Assembly (NCBI GenBank): GCA_047495785.1
Contig: JBLDXI010000028.1
Coordinates: 496,001 to 560,000 of the forward strand
Length of the DNA stretch: 64,000 nt
DNA from: Lepidodermella squamata
Lineage: Eukaryota > Animalia > Gastrotricha
Reading direction: 5' to 3'
Part shown: positions 11,573-19,722 of the stretch, piece by piece
Layout of the letters: each line of letters starts with the position of its first letter
Position numbering within the stretch: the first letter of the stretch is position 1
Notes under the pieces: model-generated
The model's database searches: none
Told to the model about the DNA's origin: nothing
What the model saw: the letters and a program-made list of their open reading frames with translations, nothing else
Made by a program: the position numbers and the translations under genes

Positions 11573-14500
11573 ATGATTATATATTCTTTATTGTTATCTG
11601 TACTATTGCTCAGTCAATCGCTTGCCGAGTCTCCGGCTAGGGGTGAGTTTCATCACTCTGAAAAATCTAACATGCTGTCATGCTTAATGCTTTTCAGGCT
11701 TGGTCTACTATCCTCCATACAGCGATCCATTTGCTGATTCGGCGGATCCATGCTCTCAGCTTTTTGAATGGAAGGTGACAGAAGGGTTTGTTGACTTGGA
11801 CCTGACTTTTAATTGATTTTTAAACATGTTTTCGACATTTTAGAACTTTTGTTACTCCGAAACCTGATACAATGAAGGAGTGCCGTGGCTCCGTTAATAA
11901 TATTCCATTCATTGCTCCGAAAATTGCGAGCACAAGCATGGATCAGGAAGCCATCGAAGATTACTGGGTGGATCTGAGTCAAAACCCTCTTGGCAGTTTC
12001 AACATGGATTTTACATGTAAAGACCAGTCTGGCCGTGTTAAAACAGGCCTTTACTACTGGGTCTACATTTTCAAGAAGCAAGGTTTTACAAAGACCTACT
12101 CGTACCAAAGTATGATGTCTTGGGACACGGAGGGCAAGCTTTTATTCCAGCCCATCGAATCACAGACAGCTAACATCTCTTGCCGGTATTACGATTCAGC
12201 GAAAGGCTACATGACGCCAGTGCGAACCTGGCGCATCAGTTTTAAACAAACAAACTTCGTCCAGTCAAACAGTGTGCAAATACACAGCTGTTTGACTAAT
12301 AACCGACCAGTGCTGTCGTCGAATCGTGAAGTCAACGTTGTCGTCACATCGAATCGGCTCGAATTCTACCCATTTTGCCCGATTTACACGTGCAAAGTTA
12401 ACCCGACTAGCCCGTTCGAGCCGGTCATCTACACCCCGCAGCTTCCAAAATGTGAAATTAACAGCCGTGATCCGGCTAGTTACCAAACCTGCTACCTAGA
12501 CCCGCCGCAAGATCGCGAGGTCGCTTACTCCTGCAGATCTCCTGTTGGTGTGGGAGAAGGATCGGTTAAAATCAACGTGCAAAGTGGAGCGAGATTCGTT
12601 AACGACGAGGATTTCAAACCTCTTTACTTCAAAGAGGACGATCGAGATAGTGCGTTATACTGCACGGTAGACCCGAAAACTGCCCCCGATTCAGTACCTC
12701 AATGGGAGTTTTTGTCATCCAACTCTTACGGAGCGACTTATCAACCGTTGGTCTCAAGTTTGTACAAACAATTGAACGAAATTTCAACGGGCAGGCATCG
12801 GTTGATCATCACAACAGTTAAGCCTGAGCATGAGGGATCGTATCGTTGCGTTATCCCGCAATCATCGCGAGTTGTCGCGGGTGGTAAGCCAATTTACGGC
12901 TACTACTTCGTGAAAGTCTACGGAAAACCGCAATGTACCCCTTATGACGGTGCCTCAAGTCAGCCGTTGATGATCAACGGCGGTGCGGTTAATATCGATT
13001 TGAGGTTAATGTCTAGCTCATATATCACCATGCAATGTTCTCAATCTGTTGTGACAACGTGCCCAAATGATGACAAAACTTCAGATCGCGTGTGCGAGCC
13101 TGTTGCAGTGCTGAGGAAGGACGGCCAAGTTTGTGCCATGTCAAACGTGACGACTTCGAATTTCTGCGGCGGGACTCAAAATATCAAAACTTCACAGCCT
13201 AGTCCTGGTTTGTTGAGAATCGATGTTTCGCTGAATAATAACGGCGGCGCTGATGCGTCAGTTATCGAAAATATCCGCGGCTCTTACGTTGTCCAACTAG
13301 TCTACCCAGCGCCGGCTAATTTACACCAAGACGTGCCATTCACCATCAACGCAGCTCCGCCAACGCCGACAAACGCGGGCTCGCAGTCGGAGCGGCAGGC
13401 TGACGGCGGTCTGTGGTGGATTGTGTTAATCGTAGCCGGAGTGATTTTAATCGTGCTTATCCTGTTCGTCATTGGCTATTGCTTGCGGCAATCGGGCCAA
13501 ACTTACCCGGTTGACAAGAAGGAACGCGATGCTGGTCACGATCCGGTTAAAGAGCTCAAAGATGCGGGTTTCACCGACTTCTCAGCGCAACCGTAAGTCC
13601 TCCTGAAATTGTCTCATTTTTCTAGGTTTTAATCCTCGATATTTTTTGTCAATTTCTTCCCTCGGTTTTTCTAGACTTATACCTAGGTACGTAAAAGATA
13701 GGCTTATATTAAATTTATTAACTCTTGACAATTTCAACTCAACCATTGTTTCCGCCGTCTGTCGAGGAAATTCGCCAATATTCAGCCGTTAAATCGACCA
13801 AGTTATATTTTCTTTTAGGGCAAAGTTTTTGCGCTTTTTACACTTATGGCCTGGGGTGTGTAGTTTTTTTCGCGGTACCAGTCAGTACACAATTTGTATC
13901 GATTTTCGATTCAATAGCACTTGAAAAATTGTTTGTAGGCTGCTCGACCACTCAGAAATTCTATCCAATACAAAAGTGTTGGTTTAATTACTGCGATAAA
14001 AAAATCGACGGGAACACAATTAGAGTTACGGCATTTGAATAATTTAGCGACCACGTTTAATTTTCTGAAAAATATCTCGGATGATTTTTCGGGTGTTTAA
14101 TGGCGAATTTCCGTGGTGTCTATGCCACGACGACGACGGCGGCGGTTCAAAAGTTGAGAAAACTATAATGACCGCTTGCGCAAGTGTTGTTCATGTCGGT
14201 TTTGTGACCATTGTCGGCGCCAGACAGGTGTACTTCTTACTCTACTATCTACTATCATAACCACACACAACACAAAACACAAGAGCCAATAGGTATACCT
14301 ATTTCTGATGATGAAGCCTTTAATTGATATATCATTATCATCATCAATAACCACCGACCGACTGTTGTTTTCGTCGCCGCTGCTGCTGCTGCTGCAATAA
14401 TAATTTCTTACCCGCATGTGATATCTACGGCATCTAATCGTCACATACTACACGCAGAGAAATGCTAATATTATAACGTAAACAACAAAGCTATGCGAAG

Positions 14501-17500: not shown

Positions 17501-19722
17501 TCTTTTAAGGTGTCACCTGTCAGCAGGCCGTGTTTGTGCGGCTTGAGGCGTTGAGATCAATTATTTGATTGTAGGGCCACACGCGACGCGTATTTATAAT
17601 TCAGGCTGAATTCAGCATTCAGTTCTGTAATCACAACTCGCCTTGTAAATAATAAGTTTCGAGGACGCAAAATTCGATTAACGACCGGCCGCCGGATGGC
17701 GAGCGAGCGAGCGAGCGAGCGAACGAACGAACGCTTGATACATTGGCCTGTTTTTGTTGTTTGCGCCCAGATAATGAGGCGCCTTTTTATTGTTGCTTAG
17801 TCATCATCACCACCAGGTATAATGCGAAAAGGGCGATCGCGCAATTCGATCGTTTCAGCTGTTGTTTTTGCGGCGATGAGGATGTGGCCACAAGGCAAAA
17901 TGCGCTCCAGATATTGTATGTTTAATGCGGATCAGAGCAGCCTTCTTCAATAATAGCAATAATAACAACAATGGTTAAGGCGGCTGTTGGCTTTTTGAGC
18001 GCACACACCTGTAAATAGGCGCTCGCTAGTGGTTTATTATGATATCGCTACACTTTTGTTGTGTGCGGCCCGTCGATTTTCGCCGATTGATAATGACTAC
18101 ACAGCTGGTAGCAATCGCGGCTCGTATTATAAGAGAACGAGCGAGAGAGAGATGAGGAAAAACGCCAATTTATCCACGCCGGCTAGAGTACGATGCTTAT
18201 CAAGCCGTACAGCGTACGAAAAGAATCCAACTACGCAAGAATGAACGAATAAAAAATTACGCGTACTACAACTCGACAACAAATATCAAGTGAAAAACGG
18301 ATTTTACGCCCAATTTTTACCTGATATCTAAATTGATCCACCTCAAAATTTCAAGTTGTTTGATATTCAACTCTTGTCACGTGAAATTTTTTTGAAAAAT
18401 GAAATTTCACCTGATTTGGAGGCGTCTAAATTGCATTGTACGACAGGTTAGAGGTGATACGTTCGATGAAAGGCGGAGATAGTGCGTAAAAAACACGCCG
18501 CGGGCTCGAGTTCATTATCTCCTTATCTCGTACACGACTCATCATCGTGATATTTTATTACTCGTAAACGGCTAGTTGAGTTTGTTGTTTTTTCTGGGTA
18601 GATGCATAACCTCGGAATGCATGCAAACGCAAAAAACACGGGCAGCAGCGGAGATATCATTAAAAGACGTTTTTTTGCCCCGTTGCCCTGACGGGAAAAT
18701 ATTATTTCTATTATTTAATGTATTATTTTTGTGTCGACCACTGCGTTGAAATAACAACATTATTGTACCCTGTTCTGGCGCTGTACAGTACATATGCGTA
18801 TGAGCTGAGGTCAGAAACCGACGTGAAATGAACTGAAATTGCATGGCTAAAGAGTTGATTGGCCAAGCTAAAAATTGATAATAACAGTAATAAAAAGTTG
18901 ATTTTAATTCTCAAATCGATGTAAGATGCGGAAAATGGTCGTTAAGAAATTTGCAATAATTGATATTATAGAGATTAAGGCTGCGAAATGACGCTATTAA
19001 GGGAAAATTCATGTAATTGACTTGGCGAAAGCGTCGTTGACTGCGAATAATTGCTATTTTAGAACAGAAAGACAGTAGTAATTGAAGAGCTAGAAAATAT
19101 GGATCAGCTTGCAATTTTTGAATTTGTATTATTCACAAAATTTTATTTTGCGAAATTTGGCGGATGTTTTTAAGCCGAGTCAAGAAAACATCGTGGAAAG
19201 ATATAAAACAAAACCTAATATTTACTGTCTCAAATTGTAATTTGTAACTGTTAACCTGGTTCGTAAATGGTATAGATCCGCATATAATTATGATAAAAAA
19301 GCTTGCTTTCCACGAATTATCGATTGAATTAAATGTTTGTTTTTCTTGCTTGCAGAGCTCACGGAGGCAGTGAACCATCGCTAACCGGCAGCGTGAAAGT
19401 GCCCGAAGACTCGGACAGTTTAGGCGAATACGGCGAAATCGACCCGACGAAATTCAACGAAGACGGCTCCTTCATCCACCAGTACGGCCCCGGCGGCCAC
19501 CCGGCCTCGGCCGTGGCGCCCGGCTCCGCGCTCGGCCCTCGCATTTCAAACTCGCAACAAGTGCCTCTGCAACAGGTGGTCGTGCCGCCTGTCATTCCCG
19601 GGCCGCCGTCCCATCACAGGAACGCGGGCCCGGCGCCACCGCCCCGGCCCGAACGGTCGGCAGCGTCGCGGCAAGCGCTACCCTCGCACCACCCGGTACC
19701 ATCAGGCGGTACCAACGTCTAG
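11573..19722 (+). CDS. Atypical L1/neuroglian-family type I membrane protein (receptor A), ~757 aa; exons 11573-11642, 11698-11785, 11844-13592, 19356-19722
   Basis: Signal peptide MIIYSLLLSVLLLSQSLA. One clear Ig signature (LYC..W..HRLIITTVKPEHEGSYRC). TM WWIVLIVAGVILIVLILFVIGYCL. Juxtamembrane GQTYPVDKKE resembles L1 GGKYSVKDKE. A phase-2 splice (CC|gtaagt ... tgcag|A) joins [28 protein letters not shown], the L1 ankyrin-binding region. Additional exons inside the long intron are not excluded. Confidence 0.88.
17699..17733. repeat. Compound microsatellite (GCGA)n(ACGA)n in the long intron
   Basis: Run of gcga repeats followed directly by acga repeats. Confidence 0.9.

Follow-up and report, generated by a model that had tools for sequence, protein, structure and literature searches.

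The L1 cell adhesion molecules (L1 CAMs: L1CAM, neurofascin, NrCAM, CHL1, neuroglian and SAX-7/LAD-1) share an architecture that is treated as among the most stable of animal adhesion receptors (PMC2196473, PMC10084454). The canonical L1CAM contains six immunoglobulin (Ig) domains, five fibronectin type III (FN3) repeats, a transmembrane (TM) helix and a cytoplasmic tail carrying the FIGQY motif (PMC2196473), and six-Ig/five-FN3 L1s have been reported from bilaterians, cnidarians and placozoans (PMC2196473, PMC10084454). Phosphorylation of the FIGQY tyrosine abolishes ankyrin binding in L1CAMs (PMC2196473), and the C-termini of LAD-1 and Nrg180 are PDZ-binding motifs (PMC2196473, PMC3627646). 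A short form of LAD-1/SAX-7, without Ig1-2, has four Ig domains, the same tail and all five FN3 repeats (PMC2196473). Here we describe a gene, designated gene A, in a 64,000-nucleotide stretch of the genome of the gastrotrich Lepidodermella squamata (GenBank assembly GCA_047495785.1, contig JBLDXI010000028.1, positions 496,001 to 560,000 of the forward strand; hereafter the window), whose predicted product joins an L1-type cytoplasmic tail to an ectodomain in which no FN3 repeat is recognisable.

Like the L1 CAMs, the gene A product is a predicted type I membrane protein that matches the Pfam family Bravo_FIGEY over both of its halves, and it shares with them the juxtamembrane pattern K/Y-x-V-x-K-K-E/D, the acidic element DSDSL-x-(D/E)YG and a segment with the tyrosine of the FIGQY motif. 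The FIGQY half lies on a terminal exon of its own, as in the Nrg167 and Nrg180 exons (PMC3627646), and the C-terminus resembles a PDZ ligand, as do those of LAD-1 and Nrg180. Unlike the L1 CAMs, gene A has an ectodomain of ~555 amino acids (aa) with ~four modules, one of them an additional module with six Cys, and with no fn3 match and a single sub-threshold Ig match. FIHQY stands in place of FIGQY, and a Pro-rich extension of ~75 aa follows it. The short form of LAD-1/SAX-7 is a splice isoform of a canonical gene, whereas gene A is short throughout and its domains are not recognisably L1. The tail is that of an L1 family member and the ectodomain is not, and gene A is a variant of the L1 kind, not a canonical member. 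Among the open-access texts searched, none describes an ectodomain of about four modules that lacks FN3 repeats and is joined to an L1-type tail. Taken as a whole, the locus is best explained as an intact single-pass surface receptor of L1-type descent that has kept its tail, a reading to which we assign a probability of roughly 0.6.

Gene A comprises four exons on the + strand (11573-19722 of the window, which is animal DNA of ~39-48% G+C) and encodes a product of ~757 aa in the order signal peptide, ectodomain, one TM helix and L1-type cytoplasmic domain. Its orthologue, P0001, is found on contig L003 of a related species, which is represented only by metagenome contigs, in ENA. The parts of the gene are:

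11573..11642, + strand: exon 1, with the ATG and the signal peptide MIIYSLLLSVLLLSQSLAESPAR; ends in phase 1 at donor GTGAGT; same layout and phase in L003
11698..11785, + strand: exon 2, a conserved N-terminal segment (G)LVYYPPYSDPFADSADPCSQLFEWKVTE; ends in phase 2 at donor GTTTGT
11844..13592, + strand: exon 3 (the big exon), with the rest of the ectodomain, the TM helix and the juxtamembrane half of the tail; uninterrupted over 582 full codons
13593..19355, + strand: intron 3, 5.8 kb, without recognisable coding sequence
19356..19722, + strand: exon 4 (the tail exon), with the FIGQY half of the L1-type tail, the Pro-rich C-terminus and the stop
19996..20001, + strand: AATAAA, a candidate polyadenylation signal found by pattern search ~275 nucleotides (nt) past the stop

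The initial annotation of this locus had given the start at 11573, the end of the stop codon at 19722 and the junction 13592^19356 exactly, and had overlooked the small exon 2 (11698-11785), which matches contigs L001-L004 with 61% identity (tblastn, E 1e-10) and whose phases were reconstructed in both species. The splicing of exon 3 to exon 4 at 13592^19356 is supported by sequence comparison, and the pairing of these two exons, already proposed in that annotation, is upheld by collinear Pfam profile halves, conserved phase and conserved linkage in the second species. The strongest internal argument is that exons 3 and 4 carry two collinear halves of one Bravo_FIGEY domain. The donor GTAAGT directly follows 13592 (...CAACC/GTAAGT in both species), the acceptor ...cttgcttgcag directly precedes 19356, and both species have canonical acceptors. 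Contig L003 has the same signal-peptide exon, exon 2 and big exon, with the tail exon 4.2 kb downstream; the splice phases are identical in both species (1, 2, 2) and the GT-AG sites are shared. Introns 1 and 2 of gene A measure 55 and 58 nt, as against 5.8 kb for intron 3 (4.2 kb in the relative).

Two sequencing runs matching 13480-19479 behave as DNA, in that their contigs run inside the intron and show no spliced joint, so that the evidence for the junction is comparative and profile-based only. All joints listed for the matching runs were rejected as opposite-strand contig artefacts, among them one at 13561/19419, which is not the splice. Over 13480-19479 run X1 has many opposite-strand joints ~100 nt apart, and the sequence at one of its loose ends (19429) reads as 19667-19696 in reverse complement; these look like hairpin or fold-back contig artefacts rather than biology. 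The contigs of run X2 have breaks and variants at ~14.1-15.2 kb, inside intron 3, which suggests repeats or heterozygous indels there. Read-through of the exon-3 donor (CC/GTAAGT; window 13591-13596, L003 ~3429-3434) gives Pro-stop at once in both species, so that an unspliced message would encode a receptor with the juxtamembrane half of the tail only; this may be chance, since a GTAAGT in phase 2 always gives Pro-stop.

The assignment of the cytoplasmic domain to the L1 family, first made from the letters of the sequence, proved genuine in profile searches. Exon 4 matches Bravo_FIGEY (PF13882) with 45.2 bits (cut-off 23.8; E 2.3e-11) over positions 44-83 of the 86 in the profile, and the orthologous tail exon on L003 scores 47.2 bits. 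For the juxtamembrane 40 aa after the TM helix, the sole match among 24,736 Pfam families is again Bravo_FIGEY, at the collinear profile positions 2-34 (15.8 bits, E 0.032). One hydrophobic helix (residues 523-547) and the N-terminal signal peptide give a single-pass type I topology. The features of the membrane-spanning and cytoplasmic parts are:

13411..13485, + strand: transmembrane helix LWWIVLIVAGVILIVLILFVIGYCL, the only strongly hydrophobic 19-mer in the exon (Kyte-Doolittle mean 3.5); a helix at residues 523-549 in the AlphaFold2 (AF2) model
13486..13592, + strand: juxtamembrane half of the L1-type domain (RQSGQTYPVDKKERDAGHDPVKELKDAGFTDFSAQ), ending in phase 2 at donor GTAAGT
19453..19485, + strand: predicted ankyrin-binding motif of 11 residues (FIHQY), identical in both species and aligned to its neurofascin counterpart
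19630..19656, + strand: PAPPPRPER, of the PxxPxR type, invariant across both species within an otherwise variable stretch
19711..19719, + strand: C-terminal T-N-V, class I PDZ-ligand-like; GGTNV-stop is conserved in both species

The motif YPVDKKE directly follows the TM helix. Over a 25-letter stretch the exon 4 sequence aligns with the neurofascin ankyrin-binding peptide that was crystallised fused to ankyrin-G (PDB 7xce), and in both species FIHQY keeps the tyrosine and has His in place of the Gly of FIGQY. The PAPPPRPER element in the Pro-rich stretch is a putative SH3 ligand. A second tail-like sequence, such as the alternative FIGQY exon of Nrg167/Nrg180, was not found in the window. A search of 5.8 billion proteins with the tail exon, limited to candidates of 0.55-1.75x the query length, returned no match, because of this limit on length and because the orthologous exon has not been called as a gene.

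With exon 2 included and counted after the signal peptide, the ectodomain has ~555 aa, about half the usual length, in agreement with the figure first proposed, and several lines of sequence evidence indicate that it is truly short. The signal peptide lies directly upstream of the ectodomain in both species. In P0003, a homologue of the neighbouring paralogue (paralogue B, below), a single unbroken frame runs from the signal peptide through the exon-2 motif (GFVYYPPYSDPY...C.QLFQW) into the beginning of the big exon (C.GS...I.F.AP), which fixes the N-terminus of the family. Among open reading frames (ORFs) of at least ~55 aa, the ten longest on the + strand of intron 3 gave no Pfam match, and hence no Ig or fn3, and the ten longest on the + strand of the 11.5 kb upstream gave no Ig or fn3 match. 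No conservation with the relative's contigs was found beyond the exons of the gene across 23 kb of the window, intron and upstream region included, and intron 3 shares no conserved ORF with its counterpart of 4.2 kb in L003. The possibility that Ig or FN3 exons lie hidden in the intron or upstream of the gene was rejected, since these regions contain neither an Ig or fn3 match nor a block conserved with the relative.

The ectodomain contains 18 cysteines and two N-glycosylation sequons. When the big exon was searched against Pfam, Ig_3 was matched below threshold on one stretch (21 bits, cut-off 30; E 5e-4), and no fn3 match was obtained even at E<=10, so the earlier statement that no FN3 repeat is recognisable holds. 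In the AF2 model built from a shallow alignment, the chain is all-beta with a mean predicted local distance difference test (pLDDT) of 58.7, and it is confident only around residues 250-360; a second model of the N-terminal half (mean pLDDT 48.4) resolves a sandwich in D1 and does not resolve the fold of D2. Numbered by exon-3 residues, the modules are:

11950..12258, + strand: D1, residues 36-138 (30-139 in the N-terminal-half model), an Ig-like beta sandwich with C58...W72...C113; pLDDT 55-75
12259..12585, + strand: D2, residues 139-247, a six-Cys module; pLDDT below 50 in both models
12586..12927, + strand: D3, residues 248-361, a clear Ig domain (LYC...W...EGSYRC); Pfam Ig_3, V-set and I-set matches all sub-threshold; pLDDT 80-90
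12928..13359, + strand: D4, residues 362-505, a membrane-proximal Ig/FN3-like sandwich with a Cys-rich insert; pLDDT 60-80

In structural comparison with VIA-align, D1, whose C...W...C spacing is typical of Ig domains, matched a semaphorin Ig domain best (Z 8.0; root-mean-square deviation (rmsd) 2.4 A over 83 residues), followed by CD8alpha, the Izumo1 Ig domain and nectin D1. Izumo1 was also the top Foldseek match of the N-terminal-half model, covering its Ig-like part only. All six cysteines of D2 are invariant in three full homologues, and D2 is the least conserved module. Residues 247-505 compare well with two tandem Ig-like domains (sDscam, PDB 7y6o, Z 12.0, rmsd 3.6 A over 188 residues; Dpr4, PDB 6eg0, Z 12.4). 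In Foldseek the whole chain matched multi-Ig arrays (titin, DCC, Dscam Ig1-4, sidekick Ig1-4, hemolin and axonin-1) over ~500 columns with a TM-score of only ~0.2, and because of this low score the match is to a string of beads and to no particular arrangement. The language-model features of the ectodomain are of the Ig type. When 1.84 billion representative proteins were searched with a profile built from three full homologues, ten matched, namely P0002, P0003 and P0006, which are members or fragments of the family itself, together with generic V-set repeat proteins that align only to profile positions ~273-347, which correspond to D3; L1, contactin and hemolin were absent among the ten.

In our reading of the models, the ectodomain would consist of about four modules, three of them Ig-like. 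Two suggestions in the initial annotation fare differently here. Its one clear Ig signature is D3 (LYC, W and SYRC; Ig_3 at E 5e-4; pLDDT 80-90; Z ~12 to Ig tandems), through which the protein belongs to the Ig superfamily at the level of the fold. Its four divergent Ig domains are borne out as to the number of modules, ~four, and for the three that model as Ig-like, but not for D2, which was not modelled as Ig. Compared with the six Ig domains of the L1 layout, ~555 aa would fit about four or five modules, and in place of three to five membrane-proximal FN3 repeats a single sandwich (D4) stands between the clear Ig domain and the membrane.

A search of 5.8 billion proteins with the big exon brought up just two relatives, both of them in ENA metagenome assemblies; of these, P0001 is the orthologue (62% identical over 100% of the length). 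Over the big exon the proportion of nonsynonymous differences (pN) is 0.26 and that of synonymous differences (pS) 0.86, which is saturated; across the parts of the gene pS ranges from 0.83 to 0.97, likewise saturated, and pN is far below pS in every module. Identity to the orthologue rises from 44% in D2 through 57% in D1, 70% in D4 and 75% in D3 to 92% in the TM helix and juxtamembrane segment (pN 0.047), and in the FIGQY half a block of 36 aa is 100% identical between the species, the His of the motif included. These comparisons indicate that gene A is intact and under purifying selection and that the tail is by far its most constrained part. Two scans of JGI metagenome contigs, one with the tail alignment and one with the ectodomain alignment, gave pattern matches and no relative. 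The lineage itself is very divergent, because an acyltransferase encoded in the window, a housekeeping protein, has 47% identity with the metagenome relative and just 30% with the closest named protein of an animal.

The ectodomain of gene A belongs to a small family, one other member of which lies in the window:

30101..33968, - strand: paralogue B, with the same ectodomain family at 36-48% identity, several short introns and a TM helix (tblastn and translations)

The stalk of paralogue B is mucin-like and rich in Thr (KPTTTTTTTSTTTT...), and the cytoplasmic tail is of an unrelated kind, without a Bravo_FIGEY match at E<=10; the orthologue of paralogue B is found on L005 (10001-12629). A few residues past its TM helix there is a G-x-Y-x-V element (GEYAVV, GQYNAV, as against GQTYPV in gene A), which hints weakly that a juxtamembrane segment of the L1 type persists there in degenerate form. 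The bulk of the gene A ectodomain is in a single intron-less exon, whereas paralogue B has several short introns. A third type of paralogue is present in the related species (P0002/P0013; L008 1101-2657), and its C-terminus is short and hydrophobic (…VVFLTFGLLLIFFPHETFK). The 5 kb downstream, where there are opposite-strand genes, yielded no tail exon, and the protein may be held by a lipid anchor or carry a very short tail. Of the three types in the family, the L1-type tail occurs only in gene A.

Three other described proteins invite comparison. Hemolin of insects (PDB 1bih) is a four-Ig horseshoe, counted among the relatives of L1/neuroglian, and it is among the Foldseek matches of the whole model. 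It is not known to have a TM helix or tail. The protein in the solved structure is soluble, whereas the tail is the conserved part of gene A, and the likeness is that of a generic multi-Ig array. The earlier suggestion of a hemolin-like Ig1-4 horseshoe was not demonstrated, since horseshoe structures appeared in Foldseek only as such arrays. The sDscam proteins of chelicerates (PDB 7y6o), which are among the best matches of D3-D4, represent an analogous shrinkage of a large Ig superfamily receptor to few Ig domains; they are of another family with another tail, and the likeness is one of fold and evolutionary pattern only. In the tapeworm Schistocephalus solidus, A0A183SHS7, a 'Bravo_FIGEY domain-containing protein', has its TM helix at 769-792 (PMC12090676). 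Its ectodomain, below canonical length and ~200 aa longer than that of gene A, is likened here by annotation, from the tail domain alone, and not by sequence; the position of the TM helix hints at shortened L1-type forms in other lineages.

We propose that the outer Ig-like modules of the gene A product bind a partner on another cell, either homophilically or heterophilically, and that the 11-residue FIHQY segment would recruit ankyrin and hence the spectrin skeleton. Phosphorylation of the FIHQY tyrosine probably switches ankyrin recruitment off, as in the L1CAMs, and YPVDKKE, PxxPxR and T-N-V may serve as further adaptor sites of the FERM, SH3 and PDZ type. As to origin, an L1-type gene would have lost its FN3 repeats and some of its Ig domains and diverged past sequence recognition, and the ancestor of gene A would then have given rise to a small family particular to this lineage, with at least three paralogues, in which gene A alone kept the tail. 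We rate this descent by domain loss and extreme divergence as somewhat more likely than not, and as clearly more likely than the capture considered below. More tentatively, the L1 gene may have been rebuilt into a four-module, FN3-less receptor whose head the family reuses on three kinds of anchor: a tail coupled to ankyrin, a mucin stalk followed by a different tail, and an end resembling a lipid anchor. The members would then form a paired or tripled system of recognition, with only one of them signalling to the spectrin skeleton.

Several points weigh against the reading of gene A as a receptor of L1-type descent. The ectodomain offers no positive evidence of L1 ancestry: the searches brought out no similarity specific to the Ig domains of L1, and its remote sequence matches are generic V-set repeat proteins only. 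The AF2 confidence is low outside D3-D4 (~250-500), which makes the number of modules and the fold of D2 provisional, and the searches and AF2 models covered exons and pieces separately. The evidence for the junctions is comparative and profile-based only. All characterised L1CAMs of which we are aware have Gly in the motif (FIGQY, FIGEY or FIGAY) where gene A has His. Finally, the search of this genome covered the 64-kb window only, and a canonical neuroglian may lie elsewhere in the genome.

The rival explanation that survives best is a chimera, which we consider unlikely as the history of this gene: a family with an Ig-like ectodomain, specific to this lineage, came first, and one of its members later acquired its TM, juxtamembrane and FIGQY parts from an L1-type gene, through recombination or retroposition. 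The ectodomain would then never have been L1, and the present working would be unchanged, that of a new recognition head wired to ankyrin. The absence of detectable specific similarity of the ectodomain to L1 Ig or FN3 domains speaks for such a capture, as do the two paralogues that bear the same ectodomain on other C-termini (the mucin stalk with an unrelated tail, and the hydrophobic end), and the intron-less ectodomain of gene A, set beside the short introns of paralogue B, fits a retroposed copy. Descent is nevertheless favoured over tail capture, because the L1-like sequence starts right after the TM helix within the ectodomain's own exon, which a simple capture of the 19356 exon cannot explain, because paralogue B keeps G-x-Y-x-V at the L1 position after its TM helix, and because in so divergent a lineage the loss of recognisable similarity is to be expected.

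An incomplete or wrong gene model, with the tail exon taken from another transcript or with Ig or FN3 exons missed, is improbable. The purely comparative and profile-based evidence for the junctions would allow it, as would the disproportion between intron 3 and the two short introns and an ORF screen that reached down to ~55 aa only. Against it stand the collinear Pfam half-matches across the junction, the phase 2, GTAAGT...AG and exon order conserved in the second species, the lack of any conserved ORF or Ig/fn3 match in either intron or upstream, and the signal peptide directly upstream, with the N-terminus confirmed by P0003. That gene A is a decaying copy, a neuroglian relic on its way to loss, is scarcely credible: the strong remodelling of the ectodomain and the Gly to His change in the core motif would suit decay, but the reading frame stays open for 757 codons, every module has a pN far lower than its pS, and the tail block, His included, is 100% conserved at saturated synonymous divergence.

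Outside gene A and paralogue B, positions 1-11500 of the window show neither a convincing coding ORF nor any conservation with the relative, and only a weak GRAM-domain match was found at 8556-9023 (E 0.003). The upstream neighbours in the relative are an SSF transporter and a kinase, and synteny is not kept past the gene itself. Neighbouring genes with large exons were located at 23271-28629, 44982-47582 (- strand), 49848-51119 and 52134-52952, and the kinds of neighbouring genes include a tetraspanin, a two-ORF FAD-dependent oxidoreductase (PF12831), a DENN-domain protein, the acyltransferase and an ArfGAP.

In gene A a tail frozen at 100% identity under saturated divergence is joined to a half-size ectodomain that is unrecognisable by sequence, and the two halves of the molecule are thereby cleanly separated. 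A frozen tail beneath a remodelled head argues, as far as sequence conservation can indicate, that the link to ankyrin and spectrin is the function that cannot be spared, whereas the head that does the recognising is open to replacement or rebuilding. Gene A is a naturally minimal receptor of the L1 type and, with its tail-less paralogues, may be used to ask what the FN3 stalk and Ig5-6 are needed for. The significance is limited by the possible coexistence of a canonical neuroglian with gene A; if the proposed descent is true and the genome has no canonical neuroglian, the six-Ig/five-FN3 ectodomain, conserved from placozoans to man, would be dispensable, and the tail would not.

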